Of a DNA stretch of 64,000 nt, positions 4,318 through 49,484 are shown piece by piece. Within the stretch, counting starts at the first letter, position 1. Each line of letters opens with the position of its first letter. The translations under genes and the position numbers were made by a program. Below the pieces are notes generated by a model. It was given only the letters and a program-made list of their open reading frames with translations. It searched no databases and was not told where the DNA came from. The stretch comes from Schizochytrium sp. TIO01 (Eukaryota > Protista > Bigyra: Labyrinthulomycetes), in the NCBI GenBank assembly GCA_004764695.1, contig SMSO01000035.1:3112040-3176039 (forward strand). Reading direction: 5' to 3'.

Positions 4318-5021
4318 GGACGATCTTGATCACACTCAATCATTGGGGAAGGAAAGTCCTATCCTCTACATTACGCATTGCAAGTTCTGACGAATCAGAA
4401 GGCCTTTATCCTTTGGATGTGGCAATGTTGAGGTCGGCAACTTGCTTGAAAAGCAGTATGATGCAGCGCATGTCCTGTTACTTACCTGGCTAGACTCTAG
4501 AGGAAGGACTTGAAAGTGAAAGGTTCCGAGTCTTGGGTTGCGGCGGGTTTTTGACTTTACGAAAGGCATAGGGAGATAATTAACCACATTGCCTAGAAGT
4601 GGGAAATACCGGACCACGATCAACACGTGCAAAGTCTGAGGATGGGGAGACTCGGAACATTACCTTCCATAGTTTGATGATCGTCAGCTGCTAGCGAAGA
4701 GGACGAACAGTGCCAAGCTTCTGACGAGCAGGGAGCCTCGCTGCTTAGGCTTTACTCTACTGCACCAGAGGTGCCAAGGCCAGTTGCGCATGAGTTGCGA
4801 CAAAATTGCCATTCTAGTTAAAGTAGATGCTACTAGGCATTGCAAAAACTTGAAGGTAAAAAGTATTAGGTAGAAGGGCACATTTGACAACCCTAGTAGT
4901 AGGAGTGTACTGTTCGGAGACGCCCGGATCGAACGCGCTTGCAGCAAATCATTAATTGATCATCGCTTGAGGATTGCCGTGTTTGAGCTGGGGCGCAGGG
5001 CCACAAACACGCAGGGAAAAC

Positions 5022-21789: not shown

Positions 21790-21808
21790 GCGCTCTCAGG
21801 AATTGATA
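21790..21808 (+). promoter_or_regulatory. Conserved upstream element GCGCTCTCAGRAATTGAT of FG-repeat gene A
   Basis: The same motif recurs at 25617-25636 and 29651-29671, upstream of genes B and C. Confidence 0.5.
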
Positions 21809-22355: not shown

Positions 22356-24213
22356 ATGATTGCTCAAAACGAAAACCATTGCTTCAGCACTGGACAAAAG
22401 AAGGTTATTCCTACGGGAAAAGCGTGTATTGAAAAGCATGGTAGGATCAAGTTAGTTCCTTCCAGTTTTCCATCTGAACAGCCATCTAAGTCTGAGCTGG
22501 AAGTGTTGAGAACCCCATCTAAGATAGCAAGCTTCACAGATGGGCATCCAACCGAGACTAAACTAGTTTCATCTAAGCCTCCGAGCTTCCCGCTTGAATT
22601 TTCGTTTGAGACTAAATCAGTCCTATCTGAGACATCAAGCCTTTTTTCAATTGGAAAGTCTGCAACTCCGTCTAAGTCTACATCTGGAAATTTACTTAAA
22701 TCTGGAGGCCCTATACTCGCAGGATCCCAGTTTGGACTATCTCCATCTGGACATTCATCCAAGAGTACATCAGTTTCCATCTGAGACGTCGGGTTTTTCA
22801 TTTGGGGAATCCCAAAGTTCGCCTAAGACGTCTAACTTTTCGTTTGGCGAGTCCAAATCCCAGTCTATGTCTTCGAGTTCTGCATTTGGATCTTTGTCCA
22901 AGACTACACCTGCATTATTTCAAAATTCAGGTTTCTCGTTTGGTGAGTCTAAACTTACACCTGAGCCTTCGTGCTCTACATCTGGACATTCATCCGAGAG
23001 TACATCAGTTTCATCTAAGATTCCGGGTTTTCCGTTCGTGGAATCCAAAACTTCGATGAAGCCGTCTGGCTCTTCGTTTGATAAGCTCAAAGCTCCATCC
23101 AAGCCTTCGAGCTCTGCATTTGGAGCTTTGCCCGAGCCTACACCCGTCTTATCTAAAACTTCAGGTTTCTCATTTGGTGAGTCCAAACCTCCACCTGAGC
23201 CTCCGTGCTCTATATCTGGACAATCGTCTGAGACTGAAGCAGTCCCTTCTGAGACTTCGCGTTTCTCATTTAGAGTATTCGAAGCTCCATCGAAACCGCC
23301 GGGCCTTTCAATTGGAGAGTCTAAAACCTCCCCTAAGCCGTCGGGTTTCTCATTCGGGAAATCCAATAGTTCGCCTAAGACGTCTGGGTTTTCGTTTGGC
23401 GAGTTCAAAGCCCCGTCTACCCCTTCGAGCTCTGGAGCTGAACCTTTGTTCAAGACTACACCCGTCTTATCTGAGACTTCAGGTTTCTCATTTGGTGAGT
23501 CTAAACTTACACCTGAGCCTTCGTGCTCTACATCTGGACATTCATCCGAGAGTACATCAGTTTCATCTAAGATTCCGGGTTTTCCGTTCGTGGAATCCAA
23601 AACTTCGATGAAGCCGTCTGGCTCTTCGTTTGATAAGCTCAAAGCTCCATCCAAGCCTTCGAGCTCTGCATTTGGAGCTTTGCCCGAGCCTACACCCGTC
23701 TTATCTAAAACTTCAGGTTTCTCATTTGGTGAGTCCAAACCTCCGCCTGAGCCTCCGTGCTCTATATCTGGACAATCGTCTGAGACTGAAGCAGTCCCCT
23801 CTGAGACTTCGCGTTTCTCATTTAGAGTATTCGAAGCTCCATCGAAACCGCCGGGCCTTTCAATTGGAGAGTCTAAAACCTCCCCTAAGCCGTCGGGTTT
23901 CTCATTCGGGAAATCCAATAGTTCGCCTAAGACGTCTGGGTTTTCGTTTGGCGAGTTCAAAGCCCCGTCTACCCCTTCGAGCTCTGGAGCTGAACCTTTG
24001 TTCAAGACTACACCCGTCTTATCTGAGACTTCAGGTTTCTCATTTGGTGGGTCCAAGTCTCAATCTAAGCATTCCTGTTCTACATCTGGACATTCATCCG
24101 AGAGTACATCAGTTTCATCTGAGACTTCGGGTTTCCTATTTGGGAAACCCCAAAGCTCGCCTAAGCCGTTAGGTTTCTCATTGGGTAAAAAAACTTCTAA
24201 TAAGGTGACATAA
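22356..24213 (+). pseudogene. FG-repeat gene A (GFSFG repeats), split by a 1-bp insertion; no RING visible
   Basis: ORFs 22356-22784 and 22594-24213 join if one C is removed at ~22777 (cagtttCcatctgag vs cagtttcatctgag in the sister repeat at ~24110). N-terminus MIAQNE..ACIEK..PSSFPSEQPS..LRTPS resembles the 71-aa repeat of gene C. Confidence 0.65.
22926..24049 (+). repeat. Near-perfect 552-bp (184-codon) tandem duplication inside gene A
   Basis: Units start at ~22926 and ~23478, with a partial third at ~24030; only a few substitutions seen by eye. Confidence 0.92.
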
Positions 24214-25616
24214 AAGAGGTGCGCTAAGTAGGGATTGTGAAGACTCGGGAAAGCGACTACTTCCTTAAATTGATGTTAAAATGTACAGCTCGGAGGCTTA
24301 TACTCGGTTTGGGTCATCCCAGATTGAGCATTAACTGCTGTAAGCTCTACATTAAACGTACTGGAGTACTTTGTGTCTTCAAAGATTTTGTTGACGGGTA
24401 GTCTTATAATAAGATTAATAAATTCATTAGAAATCTTGTATCGCATGCCTTGAATACTGTTTAGGTCTAGACCAGTGCTGCTAATTTTAAAAGCTTGGTA
24501 GAGCTATTGCAAAAGCAACTTTAAAAAAATAGACGCGGCTGCGCAGTCTAATCTGGGCAGTGCTGACTGTGACCTGTTTCAAAGCTCACATAGTAAGTGG
24601 TCATCAACAGTGGGACAGGGCGTGCATGTGCCTCGCTCCATCTGTGTGCGGTGCACTTTCAGGCTCACTTCAAATTCAACAAACATATAGGTTAGATTAA
24701 ATTAGGAATCATAGCTAATAAATCATGAAACATAGTTCGAACTATTTCGCCTTGATGCTCCCTTTTGAGATAAGGCGTTTGGCTCACTCGTCTACTTCTT
24801 TTTTACTTTCATCACAACGCCTTATCGTGGAAACTGACCAGGGTCTCTCTAAGACTGATATTTCTATTACTGCGAGGTAAGTTTTAGGAGATGATTTTAC
24901 ATGTCCTGATGCACGTAGAAATACCTATAAGACAATCTCTATTATGTAAACAACAGATATTTATTATATTTTTTCAATCATTGCGATTCTTTGGTCTCTG
25001 CTTTCTTCGAAAAGCTCTCCCCTAAAGTGCTTGGGCCATACAATTTATTGTGTGTATTTCTCAATATCTCGGCCTTTTCCGTACTAAATCGCTGTCATTT
25101 GAATTCCAATCTTTTGAGACCTACCTTTTTCCTATTTCCGAAACAGTCATAACTACTATTTCTCTCGTCACTTTGTTCCATCTCTTCCTGCAATATAGTC
25201 TCCAGATATATAAGCTAAGGGCAGAGGGGCCATTCAAGCAGAGAACATTTGGCTCAAAGCAAATAAACAATGCTGTGCAGTTGCCTTCTTTTCTTATAAC
25301 AATTAAATCCACTTTCTAACTTCCCCCGTCCAGTTTAGAAAGATTAGATTAATGGAAGTTTCAAACAGTTAGTCATAAAAGTATCACATTCAAGATATTT
25401 TATAAAAGCTCTCCCCAGTGCAGTTAGCGCTGTTTTAGAAAAAAAATAGTTCTTGAACTATTACTATTACCTCTTGCTCGGGTCGCAAAGCCATCTCTTA
25501 TAGTTTTACACCACCACTGAATTCACTCTCTTAGTTTATTCAATCACTTGATGAATCCATTTAATCAGAACTGGTACTTGCATCGCTGCAGTTTATGATC
25601 AATCAAGCTGTTCTTA

Positions 25617-25636
25617 GAGCGCTCTCAGAAATTGAT
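25617..25636 (+). promoter_or_regulatory. Conserved upstream element of FG-repeat gene B
   Basis: gagcgctctcagaaattgat, identical to the copy at 29651. Confidence 0.5.
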
Positions 25637-26203
25637 GCACCTTGCTAGTAGTATATAGTACGTAGGTACTTTATTGGATTAAAAAAATATATTTAAAAAA
25701 ACAAAAAAAAAAAACAAGTTGATCCACTAATTTGTGGCGCGGATCATTATGAAACGGTTTCCTCATGACAGACAAGCAAATATAGAGGATCTGGACGAAG
25801 ATTACAGAGACATAAGTTTTACTCTGCAGAAATACTCGCTCAGAACCGTACGGAAGAAGCTAGAGAACGACGAGTTTTTGTTTTCTGGGATACATAATAC
25901 TCTATTATTAGAGGAGAAGTTTAATTGAAATACCTCTGCCTGGACAGACGCGATAAACTAGAATTACCTTGACCTGAAAGTTGAAGCAAAGTAGCATTTG
26001 CAAAGCCCTCTCGAGCACGTTTGATCTATCAGCGCAGCAGCTTTAAAAGAAAGTGGAAGAACTGCATTCGGGTGTAATCTTCGGTTACCATGAGACGTTT
26101 GGCTCTAGGACAAGACAAGAGAGAAGAATCTCAGCAAGGATCGTCAGAGGAACAAGCAGCCTGAATGGATTTAATTTTAATTTTAATTTTAATGATGAAC
26201 AAC

Positions 26204-27957
26204 TGTGAGTGGAGCTTCTGCGTCAACAGATACTTTATTTGGAGACCCCCCAACTCAGTGTCTACCTTCGAGCTTCTCGTTTGGACGTCTATCCGAGTCA
26301 TTCCACGCCCATTCTAGCACTACGGGCTTCTAATTTGGAGGTGCATTAGAGAGGGTCAACGACTCGCCTAGCATGGCTTTCTGATTTATAGGTGCATCCA
26401 AAATAGACGGTGTCCCATCTGGCCTTAAAGGCGGATCTCAGGCTAGCTCTTCAGGCGGTTCGTTATTGAGGAACATCATCTAGCTCTTCCGGTGACGGGT
26501 TATTTGGAGGAACATCAGTGAGGGTCAGCGCCTCGCCTAGCAATACGGGCTTCTCATTCGGAGGTGCATCCAAGAAAGACGGTGTTCCATCTGGCCTTCC
26601 AGCCGGATCTCAGACAAGCTCTTCTGGCGGTTCGTTATTTGGAGGAACACCATCTAGCGCTTCCAGTGGCGGGTTATTTGGAGAAACATCATCTAGCTCT
26701 TCCGGTGGCGGGTTATTTGGAGGAACATCATCTAGCTCTTCAGGCGGTTCGTTATTTGGAGGAACACCATCTAGCGCTTCCAGTGGCGGATTATTTGGAG
26801 GAACATCATCTAGCTCTTCCAGTGGCGGGTTATTTGGAGGAACATCATCTAGCTCTTCCGGTGGCGGGTTATTTGGAGGAACATCATCTAGCTCTTCAGG
26901 CGGTTCGTTATTTGGAGGAACACCATCTAGCGCTTCCAGTGGCGGATTATTTGGAGGAACATCATCTAGCGCTTCCAGTGGCGGATTATTTGGAGGAACA
27001 CCATCTAGCTCTTCCAGTGGCGGGTTATTTGGAGGAACATCATCTAGCTCTTCCGGTGGCGGGTTATTTGGAGGAACATCATCTAGCTCTTCAGGCGGTT
27101 TGTTATTTGGAGGAACACCATCTAGCGCTTCCAGTGGCGGATTATTTGGAGGAACATCATCTAGCTCTTCCAGTGGCGGGTTATTTGGAGGAACATCATC
27201 TAGCTCTTCCGGTGGCGGGTTATTTGGAGGAACATCATCTAGCTCTTCAGGCGGTTCGTTATTTGGAGGAACACCATCTGGCCCGCCAGGTTCCATCTTT
27301 GTGTTTGGAGAATGTCAACCTAACACTGCAGGTAACATATTCGGAGGAACCCCAGGTAACATCTTTGTGTTTGCAGGACATCCACCTAGCACTTCAGGTA
27401 GCTTATTCGGAGGGTCTCCACCAAGTACTCGAGGTAACATCTTTGTGTATGGAGGACCTCCACCTGGTACTTCAGGTGGCATGTTTGTAGGACCTTCCTT
27501 TCAGAATTCAGGCGGTTTATTTGAGAGATCCGGTTTTAGGAATGCCGTCTTAGAGCAGAGAATCACTCGTTTAGAGGGCCAAGTGACACTCTTGCAAAAT
27601 CAAATCGAAAGCCTTCGAAATTTTGCCGAAGAGCTTATTCCAGACAAAGCCAACGCTGGTATGTCCCGAGATCAAGAAAAGTCCTCAGCAGAGGAGGAGA
27701 GTAGTCCTATAACTTGTCCCGTCTGCCTCGATGAGAACCTGGCCCCAGAGATTTTATTGCTACAGCCTTGCCAGCACATCTTGTGTAATGCGTGTCATAA
27801 GAAGCTATTTGTTAAGGAATGTCCATTATGCCGAGGCCCTATTGAATCCACTCATGTACCTTCAATACTACTTCATACGGAACAAGATTATCAACATTAC
27901 AAGGAAAGCAGAACAAGGAGAGTGCCTTACAGAGATCGGAGAAGGAGAAGAGTCTAA
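26204..27957 (+). pseudogene. FG-repeat gene B: GLFG repeats + coiled coil + C3HC4 RING, with a decayed 5' end
   Basis: Open frame 26470-27957 encodes 17 LFG units, LEQRITRLEGQVTLLQNQIESL and CPVC..PCQH.LC..C..CPLCR. Upstream FG-coding sequence has TAA at 26331, TGA at 26382 and a 2-bp deletion at ~26466. First in-frame ATG is 27481. Confidence 0.7.
26620..27280 (+). repeat. 17 x 39-bp coding minisatellite (GGLFGGTSSSSSG)
   Basis: ttatttgg recurs every 39 bp from 26635 to 27259; a 4-unit higher-order pattern is visible. Confidence 0.93.
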
Positions 27958-29038
27958 AATTTGCTTGCTACAACACTATTTCTCGAATTACGGCTATTGC
28001 ATATTTACTTGGGTTGAGATCATCTTATTGTGTTTTTGGTCCTCTTATACCTCAGAACCATTCTAAGTGACTACACATTCCATGAAGCAGCAACCAATGT
28101 AGCAGCCTTTACAAGTGTCCAAGAAATAACGCAATACTTCAGGCCAAAATCGTTCATGAAGTGACAAGTTTGACCAGCCCATGAGATGAACAATATCAAA
28201 GCTTGAGCGGTAACTAAGCTCAACTCAAGTTTGAATCTAACTAACCACAAACCAAAGATAACCTCTGAATACCCTCTGTGATTAAATTGCTATGCTTCAG
28301 TATTGCCTTTCCAGAATGCAGCATGACCTGAAAATCGATCAGGCTTTCTTTGTATATAAAGGAAGCATTAATGTGGTGAACTCTACAGCAAAAATAGCGG
28401 TACCATGAATTTTTGAAACGCTGATCTTAATATGGGTAGGTTTGAATCAGATTTCGAAACTTAGTGGTATTATAGCTACTACAATGCTTTCTTGCAAGCC
28501 TATTATATACATAATGGTTCAGCAAACGTTCGAGAGACTATCTTTTAAACACCCTTTGATTATTACCAGCAAGCCGCTGGTGTTAAAAGTTAAATGAAGT
28601 GCTAAACCCCCTGGATACCGTTTAAAACCCGAACTTGAGACAGTCTAAAGCGCCCCGAGCTATTCTTTGTCAAAAAATGAGGACCTTTTGCAGTGCTATT
28701 CAGTTTATCGCGATTTACTGCTCATGTACGATTTGAAAAATTGTCTCAAATATAAAATCAGCAATGCTACTAAATATCCCCCCTGTTTCGCAGAAGTCCA
28801 AATGCTGGAGTCACCAAATCAAGGAATAAATAACTCATTATTTTAAGTCTTTGATCTGAGTTTATCTCGTATGAATTTTTGGCTCTCTCCAATAGGTACA
28901 GTTTGGAAGAATTGTCGCAATACAGTAAGTAAAAGCTGCCTCTTACTTGACCCTGGTGACCGGATGACGCAAGCTTCATGGGGCAGAGCGCCAGATTTGT
29001 AACATCATTATTAGTGCAACAATTCTTGATGTTGTCTT

Positions 29039-29175
29039 TTAGAAAACATGTTCACGAAGCTGATATGCTTGATGAGATGACAAAAGCTATGCTGCAAACG
29101 TAATTCGGCTGCTTTTCGGTTGATCTCGTCATGTCTACCCAAACTAATGGCCAACCTACCGGCCTCACCGTAGCA
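29039..29175 (+). repeat. 137-bp dispersed repeat, candidate donor copy
   Basis: Matches 49348-49484 with 4 mismatches counted by eye. Confidence 0.9.
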
Positions 29176-29650
29176 ATGAATGTTCGCGTTGCATTGTAAC
29201 AATGTCTTTAGATAGAAAGTCCATTCGAGGAAGAATAATTAGCTCATCATAAACAAACCAAACGCTCGATTGTCTGTTCTTTTTCCCTTGGCATGAAGTT
29301 TCGTGGTATGGTGTCACATTGTCCTGAGTGATTGAAATAGTGAAAGCGCGTATTAGAAAATTTAAATGCATGATATTCATGAAGCATTGTTCATTTTTAT
29401 TAATGGAAACTGAACTTAGTCAATTTCTATACACAACCGTTCCCTAGTGCTCAATGTTCTTCAAGTAACCATTGAGTAAGTCTATCTCTATTAGACCCTA
29501 GCCAACCCATCATTGGGCTCAAACTGTGTGTCTGTCTCTATTATCTTTATTACAACCAATTAAAATGTCAGCACAAGTGAGTTTCGCCAATCTATCCATT
29601 ACCTTACATCACACGTGGGCGCATTCTAGGATTACTCTGGTGTATTCTCA

Positions 29651-29671
29651 GAGCGCTCTCAGAAATTGATA
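29651..29671 (+). promoter_or_regulatory. Conserved upstream element of FG-repeat gene C
   Basis: gagcgctctcagaaattgata, about 580 bp upstream of ATG 30229. Confidence 0.5.
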
Positions 29672-30228
29672 CCATATTGGGCATAGAAAAGTCAATTTTG
29701 TGCCCACCTTAAATATCTTTTTCCTCCTGTTCATATGTTTTACATTAATTGAGAAACAATACGTGCAAGGAATTCTTTATTTCAGGATTAAGGTGTTATA
29801 CAGTAATAGGATATTCGTGAAGCAGTTTCGGAGGCACAAACACCCAAGCCCTGTAGCAGATCCACAGACAAGAAGGGTCTCGAACTGAAGGTTGCAGAAG
29901 CAGAGGGTTCAGCCTGAAGTATTAATCACAGTCTTTGTCTTTTAGGTAAAGAAATCGGCAGGGGAGGACATTATATATAGGAATTCATTTCAGCGTTAAA
30001 AAAGAAAATTTGGTGTGGGTCTGTCTGGCCAAGGGAGGCCGTAGGTGAAGCTTCAACTCGAGAGCTAAGGATATACAGTACCTGTAAACCTGTTTCAGAC
30101 TCACCTGGCTCGCCAGCGTGGTACCTCATACAATAAATTATAGGGGCAGTACTTTGATGCAATAGGCACTTGAACGTCTGTGCGCAGAGACAAGGTGGGA
30201 GCTTGACTAGTGGAATTAGGGCGATAAG

Positions 30229-33063
30229 ATGACAGCCTTAAATATTCATTCTTCTTTACAGAAACTCGTGACCAAACCAGGTTCATTTCCACGTCCACCG
30301 ACTCGAAGAGGTTTTAGACTTTGGCCTCTCCTTTTAAGTTTATTGCTTCTCAAGGCCTGCGCTCTGGGTGGTTGGTATTTCGGCACTGATTACATCTTTA
30401 TTGAAAAACGATTCTGGGTTTACTTCAACTTAATATGGGCAACTTTAGTATGTGCATATAAAATGGGTTTATTGCCCTCTGGGGAACCATTCCATGTTGT
30501 GACACGTACTGGCCGTACGCCTGCACTGTGCCTCGAGGTAGATATGGTTAGTGAACAAAATGAACCAAACATAACTTCAAGCTCGAGAAGGATATCGCTG
30601 CAGATTTGTGCTTCTTTACAGAAATTTGCAACTAGTCCAACTTCGTTTCCAGGTTCTCAACCTAGCTTTGTCGAACAATCCAATGTTGCAACATATAACG
30701 TTGGTCGCACGCCTGTTTCTTGTCTCGAGGATGAAAGTTCAACACATGCTACAGACGTTATTGGAGTACAGGATCAATCAAATAGAATTTCAAGCTCTAG
30801 AGGAATATCGCTGCAGATTTGTGCTTCTTTACAGAAATTTACCACTAGCCCAACTTCGTTTCCAGGTTCTCAACCTAGCTTTCTCGAACCATCCAATGTT
30901 GCAACATATAACACTGGTCGTACGCCTGCTCCTTATCTCGAGGATGAAGGTTCAACATATGTCATAGACGAATTTGGAGTACAGAACGAACCAAACATAA
31001 CTTCAAGCTCGAGAAGGATATCGTTTCAGATTTGGGCTTCTTTACAGAAATTCAAAACTACACCAACTTCATTTCCAGGTTCTCAACCTAACTTCGTCGC
31101 CCAACTCAATGTTGCAACATGTAACGTTGGTCGCACGCCTGTTTCTTGTCTCGAGGATGAAAGTTCAACACATGCCATAGAGGTTATTGGAGTACAGGAT
31201 CAGCCAAATAGAATTTCAAGCTCTAGAGGAATATCGCTGCAGATTTGTGCTTCTTTAGAGAAATTTACAACTAGCCCAACTTCGTTTCCAGGTTCTCAAC
31301 CTAGCTTTCTCGAACCATCCAATGTTGCAACATATAACACTAGTCGCACCCCTGCTCCTTGTCTTGAGGAGCGAAGTTCAACACACGGCATAGAAGTAAT
31401 TGGATTACAGAACGAACCAAACATAACTTCAAGCTCGAGAAGGATATTGCTCCAGATTTGTGCTTCTTTACAGAAATTTGCAACTAGTCCAACTTCGTTT
31501 CCAGGTTCTCAACCTAGCTTCGTCGACCAACTCAATGTTGCAACATATAACGTTGGTCGCACGCCTGCTTCTTGTCTCGAGGATGAAAGTTCAACACATG
31601 CCATAGAGGTTATTGGAGTACAGGATCAACCAAATAGAATTTCAGGCTCTAGAGGAATATCGCTGCAGATTTGTGCTTCTTTAGAGAAATTTACAACTAG
31701 CCCAACTTCGTTTCCACAGTCTCAACCTATTCCCAAGAAAGAGTCGATTGGTATATCAAGAACCTTCACAGGTAACCCGTCTTGTCAGTCTGGACCTGCG
31801 TTTACATTCATGTTTCAAACTGAGTCATTTACATCAACAGCTATATTCGTGACATCTGGCCCCTCATTTGCACCTTTGTCAGAGACTGGTGCATTAGGGG
31901 CTTCTGCTAAGCCGGTCACACCGCAATTTGAAGCCTCATCATTTCGATTTGGAGCCTCGTCAGAGACTGGCGCATCGGGGGCTTCTGCTAAGCCGGTCAC
32001 ACCGCAATTTGAAGCCTCGTCATTTCGATTTGGAGCCTCATCAGAGACTGGCGCATCGAGTGCTTCTGCTAAGCCGGGAACAACGCAATTTGAAGCCTCA
32101 TCATTTCGATTTGGAGCCTCATCAGAGACTGGCGCATCGGGGGCTTCTGCTAAGCCGGTCACACCGCAATTTGAAGCCTCGTCATTTCGATTTGGAGCCT
32201 CATCAGAGACTGGCGCATCGAGTGCTTCTGCTAAACCGGTCACACCGCAATTTGAAGCCTCATCATTTCGATTTGGAGCCTCAACTGAGACTGGCGCATC
32301 GGGTGCTTCTGCTAAGCCGGTAACACCAGAACCCGGAGCTTCATCCGAGACTGAAATAACTCCATCTGGTTTGTCTGGCTTCGCATTTGGATCCACGTCA
32401 TCTAGGAATGGAGGTTTAGAGAAGAGGATCATTCACCTAGAGAACCTAGCAGAGCACTTGCAAAAACAAATTGAAAGCCTTCGGGGTTTCGCGGGGCAGC
32501 TCATTCCAGATGATGCATCAACAACAGCTCAAGTTAGAGAGCCCGCATCTTTATCTAAGCGGTCAGCACCCTTGTTTGAACCTTTATTCGAGACTGATGC
32601 AGGTTCAACTGGAACATCTAGATTCACACATGGATCCAGGTCATCTAGAAATGATGAATTGGACCAGAGAATCATTTTCCTAGAGGACTTAGTAGTGCAA
32701 CTGCAAAAACAAATAGAGAGCCTTGAAAGTTTTGCGGGGCAGCTAATTCCAGACATTGATGGCGGCTGCTTACTTCAATGTCAAGATATTAAGCAATCCG
32801 CAGCAGAAAACTCCGATGAGCTTGTACTTTGTCCTGTTTGCCTTGAGGAGGACCCTGTGGTGGGCATTATATTGATACAGCCCTGCCAACACATATTATG
32901 TAATACGTGCCTTGAGAAGGAATTCACTCAAGGATGCCCGTTGTGCCGAGGCCCTATTGAATCCAAACATGTACCTTCAAGGCAGCTTCATACTGAACAA
33001 GAGTATCAGGACTACAAAAGGGATAGAAAATCAGCAGCGGAGTTAGAATATGATGGACGATAA
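30229..33063 (+). CDS. FG-repeat gene C (intact, 944 aa): N-terminal hydrophobic segments, 6 x 71-aa repeats, FRFG repeats, two coiled coils, C3HC4 RING; putative E3 ligase
   Basis: Uninterrupted ATG-initiated ORF. RING CPVCLEE..QPCQHILCNTC..CPLCRGPI; two LxxRIIxLE..LQKQIESL..FAGQLIPD modules. Confidence 0.85.
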   Translation: MTALNIHSSLQKLVTKPGSFPRPPTRRGFRLWPLLLSLLLLKACALGGWYFGTDYIFIEKRFWVYFNLIWATLVCAYKMGLLPSGEPFHVVTRTGRTPALCLEVDMVSEQNEPNITSSSRRISLQICASLQKFATSPTSFPGSQPSFVEQSNVATYNVGRTPVSCLEDESSTHATDVIGVQDQSNRISSSRGISLQICASLQKFTTSPTSFPGSQPSFLEPSNVATYNTGRTPAPYLEDEGSTYVIDEFGVQNEPNITSSSRRISFQIWASLQKFKTTPTSFPGSQPNFVAQLNVATCNVGRTPVSCLEDESSTHAIEVIGVQDQPNRISSSRGISLQICASLEKFTTSPTSFPGSQPSFLEPSNVATYNTSRTPAPCLEERSSTHGIEVIGLQNEPNITSSSRRILLQICASLQKFATSPTSFPGSQPSFVDQLNVATYNVGRTPASCLEDESSTHAIEVIGVQDQPNRISGSRGISLQICASLEKFTTSPTSFPQSQPIPKKESIGISRTFTGNPSCQSGPAFTFMFQTESFTSTAIFVTSGPSFAPLSETGALGASAKPVTPQFEASSFRFGASSETGASGASAKPVTPQFEASSFRFGASSETGASSASAKPGTTQFEASSFRFGASSETGASGASAKPVTPQFEASSFRFGASSETGASSASAKPVTPQFEASSFRFGASTETGASGASAKPVTPEPGASSETEITPSGLSGFAFGSTSSRNGGLEKRIIHLENLAEHLQKQIESLRGFAGQLIPDDASTTAQVREPASLSKRSAPLFEPLFETDAGSTGTSRFTHGSRSSRNDELDQRIIFLEDLVVQLQKQIESLESFAGQLIPDIDGGCLLQCQDIKQSAAENSDELVLCPVCLEEDPVVGIILIQPCQHILCNTCLEKEFTQGCPLCRGPIESKHVPSRQLHTEQEYQDYKRDRKSAAELEYDGR
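30553..31728 (+). repeat. 6 x 213-bp coding repeat, alternating A/B types (426-bp dimer x 3)
   Basis: cagattt anchor at 30601, 30814, 31027, 31240, 31453 and 31666. Confidence 0.92.
31879..32325 (+). repeat. About 5.5 x 81-bp coding repeat (SETGASGASAKPVTPQFEASSFRFGAS)
   Basis: tcagagactgg anchor at 31879, 31960, 32041 and onward. Confidence 0.92.
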
Positions 33064-33411
33064 TAAGAATTTATTTGATTTTACTGTTGCCTCACAAAAT
33101 AACTATTTAGTTGATTTACTCGATTCGGAGCCAGCTCGTTGTTTGTTTTCCCAGTTTCATCTTTCACGAAGTCGGCACTAACAAAGTATTTGAATAAACT
33201 ATTTCTATATATTCTAAACCCTGGAGAAGTAACTTCGCTGCAGCTGGTTTCGACAATTTTATGTTTTACCATGGTAGTTGAAGCTCAAACTTTGGTAGCT
33301 ATTGAAGATGATATATCAAAAAATCTGAGAGCTATACTAATTTGTCGTACTCAAACATGCCAATAAGTTTTGACACGTTTCATTAATTGCAAACAACCTT
33401 GCACTGAGATA

Positions 33412-36400
33412 CTACTTGGGTTCTGCATCACTAGGGAGAGTATCGGAGTGCCGAACTCGGGACGGCTTGGAGAAACGGGATTCATTTTCTGTTATCAAAT
33501 TAGGACTTCGCGTAGAGTCAACCATTGACCTACATAGATCCGTACTTTCTTTGGTATCTTCTTTTCTTGAGTCTCGGGTGCCAAGAATTTCGGCGTGTGC
33601 AACCAAAGACGCTTGATCCAAATCACTCTCGGACTTTATACGATGGTGATACCTTTTTAAATACAAAGCAACACCAATGCCTGCGACACAAAAAGCTCCG
33701 GCTGCTTGAGCTGCATGAATTATCGCAGATGTAGCCTTCCCCCCCCCTTCTGCGCTCGAAGAACCATTACTTGTATTTGACATGGCATTCGGTGTCTCTT
33801 CTTCGCCATCGGGCGATGCAGTGTGATAAAATGTGGATGGAATAGTGTAACCGCCAATAGGAAGTAGCTGGTCCCGAGCTGAATTCACCATCTGAGCATG
33901 CTCCTTGGCAGTTGGTAAATTCCATGTTATTCCTTTGCTTCCATCATAATCAACTAAAACTGGTGCAATCATCTCCAAACCAATGTTATCGCTCTGTAGG
34001 CTCCGCGTGTTTTCAACAAGAATTGTATTTGCCAAATTACCTATTAGGTCCATAACCCCTGACATCACAATCCTTACTTTTGTATAGTTCCAAAGTGTAG
34101 CCTCATTAGCACTTTGAAGCGGCAAATGCACCGTCATTGTTGTAAGCAATGGCGTACAGGTAGTGATGGCTTGTAGCGACACACCTCGTTCTTCATCAGT
34201 AATAAAAGCCTCTAAATTTGTTGAGCTACAATCGATCTGTTCATCAAACTCGAATGATGCAATTGGGACCGTGCTAACAGCCCTTTTAACATTATATACC
34301 GGTGTCCATGTTGTTACAGACGGTCCTGTATAGTCCACAAGCCCAAGACGCTGCCCTGATCGTGTTGAACCTTGGACATACCCGTTCTTACTTCTACATT
34401 CAAGGCGTAACTCAAGCAAGTATTTCTCACTATCAATAAAACCTGATTCTTTGCCCGTTAATATTGCCTTATGACTGTCTGTATCGAGCTCTGAAACTTG
34501 AAACCAGTCCTCCATGATTAGTCCATTCTTGTACCTTGCTGCCCATACTGATGCTAGAGTACGAGTTGAAGAACTAGCGGTTCCAGATATCCCAATCACC
34601 TCGAGACTGGGTGTACCTGTAGATAGGTGCCAAGTCGATGTTGGGTCTGCTAACCCTCCCTGCCATTCTATTGATGGACATTGTGCCGCCCAACGAAGTC
34701 TGAATGGAATAGATTTGGCTATGTTCTTGTCACAAGCTGAGGCAACTGTGACGCTCACGGTAGAGGATTGCACCCGACTGTCCAGTCTTTCAAAGAAAAC
34801 GACAACCAAGTGTCTCGTACGACCTTGTACGGTCAACTCAAAGTCTTGATTGGACGTTGCTGACCCAATCCGGTAGGCGATACGCCCCGTAGTACTTGCT
34901 GCATCAACCGAAATAATCACGTTGAGTTCGTCGTCGCTTATAGGCTGCGAAGTGGTGTCGATAAAAAACGAAAACGATCCTTCATCTGTGTCCTTTGACA
35001 GCTCCTCTGCAGGTAGTTCGTCCACAGAGAGGGTGAAAGTCTCCCGTGCATCAGTCCCTACTATGTGTGGGCATCGTGTAATCCCCCCACATACAGAATA
35101 TATGTGAGACCCGGAATGCGGGGACTGAAAAATATCGAGACACACTTTATTCAAAACGTCATTGTTGATTAAGTAGGTAGTCCGAGTCACTTCAGCTTTT
35201 TTGTATTCATTGTCGCGATTTTCCGTTTTGTGCGTCTTCACTGTCGTCCATTTTGCTTTTGCTCCTGCTTGCAGAGTGCTACTCGCACTCACTTTCGCAC
35301 CCCATATAGAAAATGATGCAGATAACGTTGCCGAAATGGAAGCTCCAAATTCGTTGCTGTATTCACGGGTGTCATAGACAGAAGTAAAGTCCACAAGTTC
35401 CTTACTTTCGTAGCTACTTGTTTCCCCAAATTCTATTGCTCCACCTCCTAAGAACCAGTCGATTTGGGGAATTTCCATCAAATGGCGCATCTATCCCCAT
35501 GCCCATTAGGTCTAAGGGATAATTTCGTGCGGTTAAGAAATCATTATCCCAATGTTTTAAGAGGTTCAGCCATTTAAGGCGCCCAACTTGAGCTTGTGCC
35601 AAGAATTCTTGAGCATCGGACGACCCTTTGTGAAGTTCAATACTTTCCTCAATATCTTTCAAGTCCTTTTCACAATTTGCTCGGGAGTAGTAAACTAAAG
35701 AAGAAACAGCTTCTCCCCATAGAAGCGACGGTTCAGATCTTATTGTACAAGTGGAGGAGTCATACGTGAGGGTAATTGATTCAGTGAGATTTGCTGTGCT
35801 GCCCAAAAAGAGAACCATATCTCCAACTTCGCTTGTAGTCCTCAACTCAAAAGTTGTCTCGCGCAGTACTATAGAAGAAGTATCCTCCAAAGATTCAAGA
35901 GAGCTGCTGATTTGGGTGTCATCATGATTATATTCTATTGAGCTACCAATCCCAATATTGACGTTAACGAAAGGGAGCTTTGTACTTAATAACGCTGATA
36001 ATGATGTTTTCGATTGTATGGTTCGCGATTTACTGTTTTCCACTTCAAAATGCATTGTAGACTCCACGGAAAATGAACCTTTGAAACTTGCCCTTGCTGA
36101 AGGTGGTTCATCGGCTGTAGTTGACGTTACAGGCGGCGCATATAGGTAGTAAAGAGGAATGGCATCCTCACTCGGAAAAGAAACCACATCATCTGCGCGG
36201 AGTACTTTGCTTCCAATAACCAGCATCCTCATTTGTAATTGAAGACTTTCACTCATCGATGAAGCCCAATAGGCTTCATTAATGAGTTCCATGTTTACCA
36301 CACGAACAAAGTACGATAAATTTGAATGGAAATCACTATTGCTGCTTATTGGATTTTGCGGTTCGCTACTCACAACAGTTGGCCGAAAAACGGATTGATT

Positions 36401-39400
36401 ATGTGCTGATAAGCCTACGATGATTTCATTGAGAAAACTTATCTCGCATGGTTTGGAAGTACTACACGGAAACTCAAATCCAGGTGAAAGACCGCTAGAA
36501 ACATTCAGACGAGTCAATGCAGGCAAGAAACGACAAACTAGCTCTTGTCCAGAGCGCTTGCTCTCGTACCTTTGGATGGTACTAATTTCTAGTTCAATCC
36601 GTCGATTCCCCTCAACTATGAAGTCAAAAGGTAAGATGTTACTACTGCATCCTGAATATGAAACATAACTTTCCTCTGTAATAGAACCCAATAATTCCGG
36701 TACTGGCTGGTATACGAATCGGAAAGACTTAGGTGATCTAGTCAAGTCGATTTGAAGCTTAGGACTACCACCTGGAAATTGATATTCAAAGCTATTTTGA
36801 GCCTCTTCATCTTCTAAGAAACTAAGATGTATTGAGTAGTTCGTTGCAGGAAGGCTGGTCAGGCTCTTGAATGGCTGATCTAGGGTATTTTGAAGTGTAA
36901 CTGATGAGCACGCGCTAACTGTTAGGGTGATAGTGATATTACCAAGTCCAAACTCACACTCAGTCGCTGCAGCAAAAACGCCAAGGCTTCGAGTTGTGTT
37001 ATCTACAAAATCATAGACATCAGTATCAGCTTTAATTTGAAGACCTGTAGACAGTAATGCGTTTGCACCTGCATCATCTTCGCTAGCTGGCTTGAATGTA
37101 TGATCACCATAAATAAAAGAAAGAGTTATTTTTGAGTTCTGAGGTACACCAAGAGAGAATTGACCTTCGGTGTCTGTGAAGGCACTCGCTATTTTTACGT
37201 TATTTTGTAACGAGTTCAGTGCTCGAACCTCTACACCTCCAATTCCACAAGGCGGATAGATACCTTGGAAAGGAAAAGTGATTCTGCCTCGAACTCTTCG
37301 GCTGTCAAGGTCTACCATGCGAAGATTATGTGCCCTAAGATGAACAAGAGGAATGGTCTGTGGAAGCAAAACTGTGTTACTATTTGTGCACGGCGTATTT
37401 GCTTCTTTGAAAGGACAAAGTCTTATGTCGCTGGAGGAGCTTTGTTTTGACGCACTCAGAATTGTTATGCTCGAATATTCGTCTGTTGCTAATATATCAG
37501 TAACATGCAAAGATGTCTTCCCCTCGAGGTTTGTCATAGTAGAGAATATTTGAGGATCGTCACCTATTGTGTAGGTAATCTCAACGTCGGTCGATGCAGC
37601 ATTTCCATCGAGATTATCAACAGCTATATCCAAGAGAGCCAGGAATGAGACTGTGTGGGAATAGCAATGATATGTCGTCTCCCAGGAAATTTCCGAATTC
37701 GCAGCGCCAAGACTATCCCAAGACTTTGGTCGGTGCCCCTTTACCCATTGAAGCCCCACGCAAATTTGGATAGTATCACCTATTTGGAGTATGTCTAACT
37801 CATCTGATATTGTATCCGAGGTAAATGTGGTATTTTGATTACTACTACAGTTGAATATCGGAGCAAGCTGCTCATAGCTCCCAATCTGAACTCCATCTCT
37901 TGCTACGTGAATCTTGTAATAGTCAACAATGTTAATTCGAATCGCTGTGACAATAACAATTTGAAAACCAATGACAGAGGTGGCAGCGTTCTCTTTTCCA
38001 GCTATAACTTGAGTTACAAACAAGCCTTCAACATTGTAGACTGAGAAGTCAAAGTCATCAGGTTCTTCAAAAGCATATCCAAGTAGATTTATACCTAACT
38101 TAGAATCCCTGCATACTGGATGTTGGCAAGCGACGCCGCTGTATCCGATGTTACATTGGGATTCTGGCCCAGCTGTTTCTGGATTTGTTAGTCCGTTCTT
38201 CACACAAAGTGTACCACCAGGACAATTTATACGCAAATTTTCATGGCAGTAATAACCAATAGGGCATATTGCACAACTATCAGACTCTGAATCTGGGTCA
38301 GTTATGTAGAATCCTGCAAGACATGTAGCACAATATTTTGATCCAAGGTGAATTGTATCCATAACAGGCTCAAATGAACTCAGAAGAGCATCGGATTTCT
38401 TCAGTCTACAGTAATGACGTTGAACATTGAAATGAACCATAATACAATCCGGCTCTTTTTGACAGAGACGCCGACAATCATGAAACGTAAGTATGTCATA
38501 AAAAACTGCAACGTCTGTACCAGATGATCCTAGCCCATTTATAGCGCAACCCTCAGAGTATATCATTTTTGCATAAGTATCTGGAATATCCATATCGTTT
38601 GCGTCATTTGCACAATATAAGTTGCCACTTACGAAAGCAGACCTGGTAGGTGGGTGGAATTTATATTCAGATGCACTTTCGGCAGATATTACTTCATCAG
38701 GATACAAAAAACATGCTTGCATCGACTGGTTATATTGCCAAGATTTGCAAGCAGCTTCCTCGATCAAGTCTGAACCTGGGTCAGACCCAATCATTGAGCA
38801 CATAAGCGGCTCAGTTGCAACTTGTACGTCTGCCACATCAGATCCTGACGAATCGTATTTTGGATTTAGATCACCTGATCTTACCGCTGTACCTGAAAAT
38901 TCGATATCCGCATAGTTGGCTTTTCTTTGACCATCACCAAAGTTCCATGCTTGAAATTTGTAGCATGGCTGAACAGTAGCAAACCACATTGCATCATTGT
39001 AAAAATGATCTTTCCAAATGGTATTGCTAGCTTCTACCCAATCATACGAATCCTTGGCGGTTGGTATAGGAAATTGTTCATATGCATAGGTCAGCAGTTC
39101 ACCAGGCTGCATTGACGTCCCTATGTAAGCAGTGGTTGTTAAAGGTGAAAATGATTTTTTACGAAGTTCTAGATGAATTCCTCTGTACCTTGAAGACGTC
39201 CAACTTCTCATGCATTCGTGATAACACTCTTTTGGACTCTCTACGTCCTGAATCATCTTGATTTTCGAGGGTTGACCTGAAATTATGCCTTGCACCATGC
39301 AGCCAGGAAACAGATCAATTTCATCTCTAGTATCTCTAATTTTCTGATGAACACCGTGCGTACGAGGGATCAAACATAGAACAAACAGAATCCATGTCCA

Positions 39401-39430
39401 AAATACATAGCTCTGAACTAATCGCTTCAT
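33412..39430 (-). pseudogene. Giant PAN/Ig-like type-I membrane protein, copy 1, frameshifted
   Basis: ORFs 35414-39436 and 33412-35490 together match the intact 2006-aa copy. Net 1-bp insertion at ~35451-35457 (cctcctaagaaccagtcg vs cctcctaaaataagtcg). Confidence 0.85.
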
Positions 39431-41163
39431 TGTCAAAGAGGTCTAGCACCTTTTCAAATTTGGGGAATTGCTGATCAAACCAACTTTTTGGCTACTAAGA
39501 ATGATAGTTACTTACGAACAAAAGCACTTCATCATTGAAATATGGATTTTGCTCAAGGTAATGAGTTTTGTACCTTCGCGATGGAGGAGGATTCCTTTGG
39601 AATGCACAAACAAAATAGTAGGGAGTATCACTTACCGTTGATCTATATTTACTCTTAAGTACTTAATACCTGTTCCAGTTATGCTCGTCGAGCATAGCGT
39701 GCACAGCGATAATTGAATTCTACAAGGAACTAAATCAATGAATATCAATGTACGTTGGAATGAAAGCTACCATCCGTTCGCAGATACGTTTACAAATAGA
39801 ACCATAAAATCTGGACCAATTATCAACCAAATAAGTTCAGACAAGCTAGTTTGGCCATCCTTTCTTCTTCTTCTGAAAGAAGCGTACTGCTCTCTATTCT
39901 TTGATGTTGTGAGCAGAAATGTCAAGTTCTTCAACAAATGTATATTAGTGCATATCTAAATGCACAGTTTGGGAGGGGGGGGGGATTTTAAAAAAACATA
40001 AGAAATAACATATATAGGGTCTATATAATTTTTTCAGTAAATTCTGTCAAGCATGACTGACAGCTTACTCAACTGACTTAGAGTTCGTTTCTCAAGCTCC
40101 TATTCGCGCACATTTATATATCCCCCCCTTGAGTGTTCTGCTCGACAAAAAGTGAAACTGACACTGCATATAAAGGTTGTCCGGGGTATCCGAGAAGAAG
40201 AATGTGTACTATAAGATTCTTAGAAATTGATTAAACTACCTTAACTTCTACCAGCAGCGAATTGTCAAAAACTTAAGCTTATGGCTACAACCGTTGCAAC
40301 TCGGTTGAACACGAAAAATCCATGGGAAAAGATGACGAATTGACTTCACTGTAACCATGCGGCGTCAGATTCTGTTAGAAGAGGGATATAAACAAGCACC
40401 TCTACCATGGTATCGTAAAGCATTCGGTATGTTGTTGATGTATAGTTCGTGTACAGCCTCGTTTCATAGAATGAAACATGTAGGTAACGTAGAATAAATA
40501 GTACATGGTCAAACCACATTTGGAATAACTCGTGCCCATGTATTGCACAAGAGTTTCTTCCCATCGTCCCTCATGATAGCCACTCCGGTGGACGGGCGTC
40601 AGCATTGTAGATTTGCACGGTCAGAGAGCGTCTATCGATCTTTATTTTAGAGAACCATATGCTCCTCGCTTCACTCACTGTGTCGAACCGTGCCGTGTTC
40701 GAAAGGCACTTGAAACTGTGACGTAATGTGACATTGAAACGCTGGGATTAATCAAGAAATCTGATGAATCAGAGCAATCACCTCAACGCTTACAGGGTGG
40801 GCAAGTGAAAGAGCTACCCGGTATTATGTATCCAATGTCAAAAAAGCACAGACATCTTTATCTAACATACTAAGCCCAGTCAATAAGATAGATGACTTTG
40901 GCGAAGTAAAGGTTAGAAGAGACAAAGGCAAACGACGACGCAATTTGGTGTGGGGCTGTCTGGCCAAGGGAGGCCGTAGGTGAAGCTTCAACTCGAGAGC
41001 TAAGGATATACAGTACCTGTGAACCTGTTTCAGACTCACCTGGCTCCCCAGCGTGGTACCTCATACAATAAATTATAGGGGCAGTACTTTGATGCAATAG
41101 GCACTTGAACGTCTGTGCGCAGAGACAAGGTGGGAGCTTGACTAGTGGAATTAGGGCGATAAG

Positions 41164-42843
41164 ATGACAGCCTTAGATATTCATTCTTCTTTACAGAAAC
41201 TCGTGACCAAACCAGGTTCATTTCCACGTCCACCGACTCGAAGAGGTTTTAGACTTTGGCCTCTCCTTTTAAGTTTATTGCTTCTCAAGGCCTGCGCTCT
41301 GGGTGGTTGGTTTTTCGGCACTGATTACATCTTTATTGAAAAACGATTCTGGGTTTACTTCAACTTAATATGGGCAACTTTGGTATGTGCATATAAAATG
41401 GGTTTATTGCCCTCTGGGGAACTATCCAATGTTGTGACACGTACTGGCCGTACGCCTCCACTGTGCCTCGAGGTAGATATGGTTAGCGAACAAAATGAAC
41501 CAAACATAACTTCAAGCTCGAGAAGGATATCGCTCCAGATTTGTGCTTCTTCACAGAAATTTGCAACTAGTCCAACCTCGTTTCCAGGTTCTCAACCTAA
41601 CTTCGTCGACCAACTCAATGTTGCAACATATAACGTTGGTCGCACGCCTGTTTCTTGTCTCGAGGATGAAAGTTCAACACATGCCACAAAGGTTATTGGA
41701 GTACAGGATCAATCAAATTGAATTTCAAGCTCTAGAGGAATATCGCTGCAGATTTGTGCTTCTTTACAGAAATTTGCAACTAGCCCAACTTCGTTTCCAC
41801 AGTCTCAACCTATTCCCAAGAAAGAGTCGATTGGTATATCAAGAACCTTCACAGGTAACCCGTCTTGTCAGTCTGGACCTGCGTTTACATTCATGTTCCA
41901 AACTGAGTCATTTACATCAACAGCTATATTCGTGACATCTGGCCCCTCATTTGCACCTTTGTCAGAGACTGGCGCATCGGGTGCTTCTGCTAAGCCGGTC
42001 ACACTGCAATTTGAAACTTCACCATTTCGATTTGGAGCCCCATTAGAGACTGGCGCATTGGGGGCTTCTGCTAAGCCGGGAAAACCGCAATTCGAAGCCT
42101 CGCCATTTCGATTCGGAGCTTCATCAGAGACTGAACCAACTCCATCTGGTTTATCTGGCTTCGCATTTGGATCCACGTCATCTAGGAATGGAGGTTTAGA
42201 GAAGAGGATCATTCACCTAGAAAACTTAGCAGAGCACTTGCAAAAACAAATTGAAAGCCTTCGAGGTTTCGCGGGGCAGCTCATTCCAGATGATGCATCA
42301 GCAACAGCTCAAGTTAGAGAGCCCGCATCTTTATCTAAGCGGCCAGCACCCTTATTTGAACCTTTATTCGAGACTGATGCAGGTTCAACTGGATCATCTA
42401 GATTCACATATGGATCCAGGTCATCTAGAAATGATGAATTGGACCAGAGAATCGTTTTTCTAGAGGACTTAGTAGTGCAGCTGCAAAAACAAATAGAAAG
42501 CCTTGAAAGTTTTGCGGGGCAGCTTATTCCAGACATTGATGGCGGCTGCTTACTTCAATGTCAAGATATTAAGCAATCCGCAGCAGAAAACTCCGATGAG
42601 CTTGTACTTTGTCCTGTTTGCCTTGAGGAGGACCCTGTGGTGGGGATTATATTGATACAGCCCTGCCAACACATATTGTGTAATACGTGCTGTGAGAAGA
42701 AATTCTCTCAAGGATGCCCGTTGTGCCGAGGCCCTATTGAATCCACACATGTACCTTCAAGGCAGCTTCATACTGAACAAGAGTATCAAGACTACATAAG
42801 AAATAGAAAATTAGCAGCGGAGTTAGAATATGATGGACGATAA
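41164..42843 (+). pseudogene. FG-repeat RING gene D (duplicate of C) with an in-frame nonsense codon
   Basis: AGA in C is TGA at 41719-41721; the frame is otherwise open to 42843. Only 2 x 213-bp and 2 x 81-bp repeats. ATG 41893 could yield a 316-aa FG-CC-RING product. Confidence 0.85.
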
Positions 42844-43190
42844 TAAGAATTTATTTGATTTTACTGTTGCCTCACAAAATAACTATTTAGTTGATTGACC
42901 CGATTCGGAGCCAGCTCGTTGTTTGTTTTCCCAGTTTCATCTTTCACGAAGTCGGTACTGACAAAGTATTTGATTGAATAATTTCTATATTTTGTAAACC
43001 CTAGAGAAGCAATTTCAATGCAGCTGGTTTCGACAATTTTATGTTTTATCATGGTAGTTGAAGTTCAAACTTTAGTAGCTATTGAATATGATATATCATA
43101 AATCTGAGAGCTATACTAATTTGTCGTACTCAAACATGCCAATAAGTTTTGACACGTTTTATTAATTGCAAACAACCTTGAACTGAGATA

Positions 43191-49202: not shown

Positions 49203-49347
49203 TTTCAACAAGGTTTAGCACCTTTTCAAATTTGGGTATTGCTGATCACACCAACCTTTTTGGCTACTAAGGAAAGATAGCTGCTAACGAACAAACGCAT
49301 TGTATCATTCAAATACGAGTTCTGCTCAAGGTAATGAGTTTTGTACC

Positions 49348-49484
49348 TTAGAAAACATGTTCACGAAGCTAATATGTTTGAGGAGATGACAAAAGCTATG
49401 CTGCAAACGTAATTCGGCTGCTTTTCGGTTGATCTCGTCATGTCTACCCAAACTAATGGCCAACCTACCAGCCTCACCGTAGCA
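49348..49484 (+). repeat. 137-bp segment present only in duplication copy 2
   Basis: Copy of 29039-29175; absent at the equivalent site 39576/39577 in copy 1. Confidence 0.88.

Follow-up and report, generated by a model that had tools for sequence, protein, structure and literature searches.

A tandem family of putative RING E3 ligases with hypervariable, partly FG-type repeat arrays and one intact member in Schizochytrium sp. TIO01

The selective barrier of the nuclear pore is almost the only setting in which domains built of phenylalanine-glycine (FG) repeats are known; some viral capsids exploit these domains. What, then, might such repeats do when they are joined to a coiled coil and a RING, as they are in a gene cluster of the labyrinthulomycete Schizochytrium sp. 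TIO01? The cluster lies at positions 22356–42843 of a 64,000-nucleotide stretch of contig SMSO01000035.1 (GenBank assembly GCA_004764695.1, contig positions 3,112,040–3,176,039, forward strand), which was analysed as a whole and is called the window here; all coordinates are window positions. It comprises four units, A to D, which the original prediction took for four co-oriented paralogs encoding RING E3 ligases with different FG flavours. All four units are indeed on the plus strand, but only C is intact, A, B and D being disrupted and A lacking the coiled coil and the RING. The picture of four working paralogs is thus wrong; the repeats, the coiled coil, the RING and the conserved tail are real. 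We tentatively favour the view that the locus holds a lineage-restricted tandem family of oligomeric RING E3 ligases, evolving by birth and death, whose hypervariable low-complexity arrays would act as stickers; it is the best of the readings considered, although short of an even chance. FG units are a recurrent, not a constant, theme of these arrays.

Units B, C and D share, in the same order, a heptad coiled coil with a terminal LIPD, a C3HC4 RING and a tail of the form ES.HVPS..LHTEQ.YQ.Y; alignment and Pfam searches both confirm that the three end alike, as had been proposed. The coiled coil is about 30 residues long and is doubled in C and D, and the conserved helical tail has about 20 residues. 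All eight zinc ligands (C-x2-C ... C-x-H-x2-C-x2-C ... C-x2-C) are invariant among the three units, whose modules score 34.2 (B), 30.4 (C) and 30.0 bits (D) against the Pfam profile PF13920 (zf-C3HC4_3; cut-off of 27). The CPVC and CPLCR of the family align with the CPIC and CPTCR of RNF4, with a hydrophobic residue in the first cysteine pair and an arginine after the last cysteine. In the RNF4 RING, the hydrophobic residue is an E2 contact and the arginine is activating. The best relatives among solved structures are RNF4, RCHY1 and IAPs, with E-values of about 1e-5. In an AlphaFold2 model of the last 227 residues of C, of low confidence as a whole (mean predicted local distance difference test [pLDDT] score of 57), two long helices (block pLDDT of 80–92), a RING-like fold (62–72) and a tail helix can be seen, and the top Foldseek matches of this model are all catalytic RINGs (c-Cbl, BIRC7, IDOL and RNF4), none with an E-value below 0.02. 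Both the model and the Foldseek search were used solely as a consistency check.

Comparison of nonsynonymous with synonymous divergence (dN and dS; their ratio, omega), which had been suggested as a check on the family, separates this module from the rest of the gene. Between C and D, the segment that spans the two coiled coils, RING and tail has a dS of 0.083, a dN of 0.025 and an omega of 0.30 (one-sided Fisher P-value = 0.003), whereas the omega of the N-terminal 216 codons, 0.68, is not significantly below 1 and the N-terminal part is indistinguishable from neutral. For the modules of B and C, dS is saturated and omega comes to about 0.25; all zinc ligands are kept. These comparisons indicate that the coiled-coil/RING module is under purifying selection. 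Its low omega indicates that the core has been functional for most of the history of the family and that the lesions in B and D described below are recent.

Unit C (30229–33063, plus strand) runs from ATG to stop over 944 residues and is the sole intact gene. Its N-terminal hydrophobic anchor (30319–30474, from Kyte-Doolittle hydropathy) is shared with D; in both, a strong segment (residues 28–51, annotated in C as 31–51; Kyte-Doolittle mean above 1.6 in C) is followed by a weaker one (residues 62–82), and in C a basic stretch precedes the first. The two segments suggest a membrane hairpin that would leave the RING on the cytosolic or nucleoplasmic side. The bulk of the disordered region that follows is a 71-residue repeat rich in serine, threonine and proline and devoid of FG (30555–31729; 5.5 copies of a 213-bp unit). 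Behind it lie 5.5 copies of an 81-bp (27-residue) unit (31879–32327), which carry five SSFRFG motifs and span only about 150 residues. The gene ends with two coiled coils (32416–32511 and 32659–32754) separated by a disordered linker, the C3HC4 RING (32830–32946) and the LHTEQ-type tail (32959–33015). At the N-terminus of C and D, some 20 residues look like the beginning of the 71-residue unit (SLQ..SLQKF.T.P.SFP; 30229–30300 compared with 30595–31719), and this N-terminus may have been built from that repeat.

Unit D (41164–42843, plus strand) is a duplicate of C with fewer repeats: it has about 1.5 copies of the 71-residue unit and two SPFRFG motifs. Its frame is interrupted at 41719 by a TGA, the corresponding codon in the consensus of the C repeats being AGA, and it retains the anchor, both coiled coils (42196–42291 and 42439–42534), the RING (42610–42726) and the tail. 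C and D belong to a tandem duplication of 10.9 kb (30007–40932 and 40942–50876), the copies of which are about 84–97 per cent identical, depending on the segment, and each hold one gene of the C/D type and one convergent gene for a PAN-domain membrane protein (2006 residues). The proposed independent expansion of different FG types consequently does not apply to C and D, as both lie within one duplication and D merely lost repeats. The PAN gene is intact in copy 2 (43191–49211, minus strand), and that of copy 1 is split into 35414–39436 and 33412–35490 by one extra base near 35451; omega between these two genes is about 0.5.

Unit B combines a regular FG array with a disrupted 5' end. Its decayed start (26192–26517, plus strand) consists of FSFG-like units broken by a TAA near 26332, a TGA near 26383 (an in-frame copy of the same repeat unit reads TCA) and a 2-base deletion near 26467. 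FG-like coding can be followed upstream to about 26205, and the ATGATG at 26192 is in a different frame. The open frame at 26518–27957 has 479 codons and no initiating ATG, the first ATG of any kind coming no earlier than residue 325. Introns of GT-AG type could formally rescue the gene, for example by joining the GTGAGT at 26205 to the AG at 26517–26518, but many such pairs are expected by chance. The array itself (26518–27519, plus strand) starts with one GFSFG, continues with 39-bp units and ends in older, diverged units. It contains 12 GLFG, five SLFG and one LLFG motif at a fixed period of 13 residues, with spacers of serine, glycine and threonine and only 3 per cent charged residues; in the older units at its 3' end (IFVFG, NIFGG and IFVYGG), the core of a hydrophobic residue, phenylalanine and glycine is kept while the spacers have changed. 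It is followed on the same strand by the coiled coil (27550–27645; a heptad pattern of L, I and V with LIPD at its end), the C3HC4 RING (27715–27831; recognized by its zinc ligands and the Pfam profile) and the tail (27844–27957; ESTHVPS..LHTEQ.YQ.Y, then a basic end and the stop codon).

Unit A (22356–24213, plus strand) cannot be counted among the RING E3 ligases, as had been claimed, since neither a coiled coil nor a RING was found in or after it in any frame when a profile of the module was compared with the six-frame translation of the window. Its ATG-initiated open reading frame (ORF; 22356–22784) and the frame of the FSFG repeats (22594–24213) are out of step by a single inserted base, without which they would be continuous; comparison with three later units shows it to be an additional C in the first repeat unit, near 22777/22778, and it breaks the frame. 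The array has ten GFSFG motifs, spacers rich in lysine, glutamate, proline and serine, 17 per cent charged residues and a higher-order repeat of 552 bp; some of its units have lost the FG (GFPFVESK, RFSFRVFE and GLSIGESK among them). A hydrophobic N-terminal segment of the C/D type is absent from A and from B. As part of the reading that we prefer, A would be an FG-only relic or derivative.

What ties A to the other units is the DNA upstream. A 20-bp motif, GAGCGCTCTCAGAAATTGAT, which includes the 8-bp palindrome GAGCGCTC, occurs in the window only at 21788, 25617 and 29651, with 0.01 matches expected by chance. All three sites are on the plus strand. The sites of B (25617–25636; 575–578 bp before the ATGATG at 26192) and C (29651–29670; 578 bp before the ATG) are exact, and that of A (21788–21807; 568 bp before the ATG) has two mismatches and a GCGC palindrome core flanked as in B and C. 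The motif is not present at D. Because it is kept at a fixed distance from the start in surroundings that can no longer be aligned among A, B and C, it suggests a shared cis-regulatory site, for which it is a candidate; because this distance is conserved, A, B and C appear to have arisen by older tandem duplication of a roughly 4-kb unit. The original prediction had connected A to the family by its N-terminus as well as by its upstream DNA; the upstream motif upholds the second connection, but the similarity of the N-terminus to those of B, C and D is not significant.

Tandem duplication, gain and loss of repeats and the disabling lesions in A, B and D agree with the rapid turnover that had been proposed for the locus. 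No hidden fifth copy was detected with the module profile in the six-frame window, and tblastn searches with C and the PAN protein yielded no further relics. About 1 kb upstream of A, at 21289–21362, there is a stretch of 74–120 bases that is approximately 75 per cent identical to the 3' flanks of C and D immediately behind their stop codons (33131–33204 and 42911–42984). It may be what remains of a further, lost member of the family, or else a conserved element of the 3' end; a search next to it showed no coding remnant.

How far do the arrays resemble FG domains? Our recount agrees with the motif numbers reported before (ten GFSFG in A, 12 GLFG plus five SLFG, i.e., 17, in B, five SSFRFG in C and two SPFRFG in D). 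FG density is 2.7 per 100 residues in A and 4.4 in B, an enrichment of 15–24 times over the background of 0.18 in ten ordinary proteins of the window. B is the sole unit to pass the Pfam Nucleoporin_FG profile (83.4 bits; cut-off of 32.2); A reaches 26 bits, below the cut-off despite its ten GFSFG motifs, and C and D have no match. A Phe-Gly core is common to the three unit types (FSFG, GLFG and SFRFG), and spacer chemistry follows motif type as in real FG domains, FSFG units having charged and GLFG units uncharged spacers. The array units are 80–99 per cent identical in DNA and are organized in higher-order repeats; the arrays are young amplifications at the DNA level, and the numbers of motifs reflect mostly slippage or unequal exchange. 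FG motif counts are thus not counts of independent events. Several long ORFs of 205–378 codons lie out of frame or antisense within the arrays (22920–24056, minus; 26564–27490, plus; 26610–27296, minus; 31815–32432, minus), because the repeat units are free of stops in several frames. Inside the arrays, the codon-usage scores of the sense and antisense -1 frames were too alike for a choice between them, and the strand of A was assigned from its upstream motif, its ATG-initiated ORF and the similarity of its units to those of B.

Engineered, charge-free GLFG repeats of 12 residues self-assemble into FG phases that are selective and into which transport receptors are taken up (PMC8245513). Since the array of B is very close in form to these repeats, it should, if made, behave physically like an FG domain, which would be a likeness of working and not of membership in the nucleoporins. 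No nucleoporin anchoring domain (coiled coil of the Nsp1/Nup62 type or autoproteolytic domain of Nup98) was matched by Pfam at E-values up to 0.1. Nucleoporin orthology was likewise not found in searches that used the B module, the FG arrays and the N-terminal part of C not being searched separately. C and D combine a hydrophobic anchor with a few FxFG motifs; their assignment to a Pom121-like group failed, as Pfam gives them no nucleoporin family and the C-terminal module that they share has only generic RINGs as relatives, the N-terminal part of C not having been searched in protein collections.

Relatives of the family are scarce. A word-indexed protein search with the coiled-coil/RING region of B returned none, and in a phmmer search with the B module against 1.84 billion representatives (best E-value of 3e-9) the hits that were read are generic RING proteins. 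Some of these have a coiled coil ahead of the RING, and they have neither FG arrays nor the LHTEQ tail. The scan of viral contigs gave no relative, and the metagenomes of the JGI gave no family member. The single JGI match, L001 (649–1428), is a protein of 259 residues with Sel1-like repeats and a C-terminal RING that was picked up through its CPVCLDEN pattern and has no relation to the family. Closest to the family is P0019, an orphan protein of 334 residues known from an MMETSP transcript and from Logan assemblies. Its N-terminal part contains three hydrophobic segments, and it shares with the family a coiled coil, a RING (with a PC.HILC core) and a tail that aligns without gaps and in the same register (pairwise E-value of 3e-14 with B, with about 36 per cent identity over 74 residues). 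P0019 has no FG motifs and no repeat array, has an 8-residue insertion in the RING and was the only protein returned by a search for its own relatives; it may represent a repeat-free ancestral form. Arbitrary low-complexity repeats in homologs had been named in the original prediction as a finding that would speak against it, and this is partly what we see: C carries mostly non-FG repeats, and P0019 none.

The preferred reading joins these observations as follows. C would be the working gene, and B and D recently disabled copies. The coiled coil would oligomerize the ligase and the RING would recruit a charged E2, while the arrays would provide multivalent, low-affinity, Phe-dependent stickers that concentrate the ligase by self-cohesion or via hydrophobic pockets of partner proteins; ubiquitination would, we propose, thereby depend on avidity. 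In C and D, the N-terminal hydrophobic hairpin would tether the ligase to an endomembrane, with the RING toward the cytosol or nucleoplasm.

Several points weigh against this interpretation. Three of the four copies are disrupted, and the sole intact one, C, is the least FG-like, with few FG motifs and none in its largest repeat, that of 71 residues. Selection on the repeat regions could not be demonstrated in the codon comparison of C and D. The second hydrophobic segment of C and D is weak (Kyte-Doolittle mean of about 1.1, a hand estimate), which makes their membrane topology uncertain. E3 activity, oligomerization, membrane insertion and Phe-dependent binding are predictions drawn from sequence. 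Furthermore, no protein like those of B, C or D, whether predicted or derived from transcripts, is present in a collection of 15 billion proteins that holds the transcriptome of the species, run assemblies and products of the neighbouring genes. That the species of the window is already sampled there follows from the exact match between an EGF-like neighbour (51484–52785) and a Logan-assembly protein of the collection; the absence of B/C/D-like proteins is weak evidence against their expression under culture conditions.

We rank the sticker interpretation, with its dependence on avidity, first, and second, as unlikely but deserving of some weight, the idea that the arrays are neutral, slippage-prone spacers in which FG recurs only because one ancestral unit that had F-x-F-G by chance was amplified, function residing in the coiled coil, the RING, the tail and the anchor of C. 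The high DNA identity among units (80–99 per cent) points to recent amplification, the largest array of C is free of FG, several units of A have lost it, omega does not fall clearly below 1 in the N-terminal part or the repeats and P0019 does without repeats, all as expected of spacers. Against neutrality, the FSFG, GLFG and SFRFG types all retain the Phe-Gly core, the older, diverged units of B have kept this core while their spacers changed, and the spacer chemistry is matched to motif type as in real FG domains.

The two remaining explanations rank lower, about equal to each other. In the first, which stems from the original prediction and which we consider improbable, the ligases would ubiquitinate transport traffic at the pore, either by partitioning into its FG phase or by binding transport receptors, or they would serve as FG decoys that capture and tag FG-binding viral capsids by a TRIM5-like logic. 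In its motif, the length of its units and their low charge, the array of B comes close to GLFG repeats of the Nup98 type and to engineered ones, and the FSFG units of A have charged spacers like Nsp1-type repeats (repeat classes as in PMC8245513). The HIV-1 capsid is reported to enter FG phases in the manner of a transport receptor (PMC10881386), which speaks for this explanation. Tandem duplication with gene loss is as seen at arms-race loci, and the membrane anchor of C and D is compatible with residence in the nuclear envelope. On the other hand, there is neither a nucleoporin anchoring domain nor nucleoporin homology in the searches made, the sole intact member is the least rich in FG, the nearest relative has none, viral contigs hold no relative and the species-sampling collection lacks B/C/D-like proteins. 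It is equally doubtful that the arrays are genuine nucleoporin-type FG domains that form the targeting module of the ligases, with different FG types selected for different clients in an arms race. Finally, we give little credence to the whole cluster, C included, being evolutionary debris of a dying or never-established orphan family with no present function: the disabling lesions in A, B and D, the frameshift in the neighbouring duplicated PAN gene, the lack of family relatives in the searches and the absence of B/C/D-like proteins from a collection with the transcriptome of the species would fit such debris, but C retains an ORF of 944 codons, the module has evolved at an omega of 0.30 after C and D split and of 0.25 after B and C did, losing none of its zinc ligands, and the 20-bp upstream motif is preserved in otherwise unalignable DNA.

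The place of the family among known proteins is best described from its two ends. The C-terminal catalytic RINGs of RNF4, IAPs (BIRC7, cIAP), RCHY1 and c-Cbl are its best matches in sequence and fold; like the family, they have the zinc ligands of a C3HC4 RING, a hydrophobic residue at the E2-contact position and an arginine that follows the last cysteine. This similarity is generic (an E-value of 1e-5 at best), and in B, C and D the RING is followed by 35–40 residues with a conserved helical tail instead of the end of the chain. Ligases of the RNF8 type, a weak fold match, likewise have a helical oligomerization segment directly upstream of a C-terminal RING, but the family has a low-complexity array where RNF8 has its FHA or recognition domain. 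TRIM5alpha and other TRIM proteins are oligomeric coiled-coil RING ligases in which the order is RING, B-box and coiled coil. The family is predicted to be of this oligomeric kind, and the TRIM5-like logic of the original prediction would have it capture a repetitive target through avidity; in contrast to TRIM proteins, its RING is C-terminal to the coiled coil, no B-box or SPRY domain is matched in Pfam and there is no homology. P0019 resembles the family in its hydrophobic N-terminus, coiled coil, RING and gap-free tail, and differs in having no array, an insertion in the RING and no relatives of its own.

The nearest precedent that we know of for FG repeats joined to an E3 ligase is RanBP2/Nup358, a giant protein of the pore filaments with Ran-binding and zinc-finger domains, which has FG repeats and SUMO E3 activity in one polypeptide and no RING. 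It thus differs in its modifier (SUMO, not ubiquitin) and in the missing RING, and has no sequence relation to the family. From the side of the nucleoporins, A is like the FxFG repeats of Nsp1, Nup1 and Nup2 in its ten GFSFG motifs with charged K/E/P/S spacers, and unlike them in falling below the Pfam cut-off, in having no Nsp1_C coiled coil or other domain and in being frameshifted. B is like the GLFG repeats of Nup98/Nup116 and the engineered 12-residue repeats (PMC8245513) in its 17 GLFG/SLFG motifs, regular 13-residue spacing and charge-depleted S/G/T spacers with an occasional proline; unlike them, it has neither a GLEBS nor an autoproteolytic or anchoring domain and lacks orthology, a coiled coil and a RING are fused to its array, it has 17 repeats rather than about 50 and its gene is disrupted at the 5' end.

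The window around the cluster is eukaryotic in character, with 38–48 per cent GC, few introns and uninterrupted ORFs of up to 2006 codons. The flanking genes encode a TMEM260-like protein, four EGF-like paralogs, a flavin adenine dinucleotide (FAD) oxidoreductase, a leucine-rich repeat protein of 1787 residues, a RabGAP-TBC protein and a glutaminase with ankyrin repeats. The FAD oxidoreductase is 99 per cent identical to the product of an MMETSP transcript and to a Logan-assembly protein, and its next best match is from Hondaea fermentalgiana. The co-oriented EGF-like paralogs (4974–6245, 13008–14222, 18901–20115 and 51484–52788) are about 400–430 residues long, have 36–58 per cent mutual identity and each carry a single EGF-like motif close to the N-terminus; they constitute a second lineage-specific tandem family, located on both flanks of the FG/RING cluster. 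Scans of the whole window for tRNAs and for Rfam families (at gathering thresholds) gave no matches.

As had been surmised, the fusion of an FG array to a C-terminal RING has no counterpart in the databases searched or in the literature found, in which no protein with FG repeats and a RING is described and nothing relevant on thraustochytrid nucleoporins turned up. Judged by its sequence, the joining appears to be a previously undescribed combination within the known class of RING E3 ligases. Its value is limited for now, as there is one intact copy, family relatives were not found and expression was not seen in the species-sampling collection. If the arrays are arbitrary spacers, the locus would still be a clear case, in one short tandem cluster, of a conserved catalytic core that gains, exchanges and loses the low-complexity regions around it. 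If, instead, this is a natural fusion of an FG domain with a ubiquitin ligase, it would show that an enzyme can be targeted by FG cohesion put to a new use, and it would offer a simple natural tool for asking what enters an FG phase.

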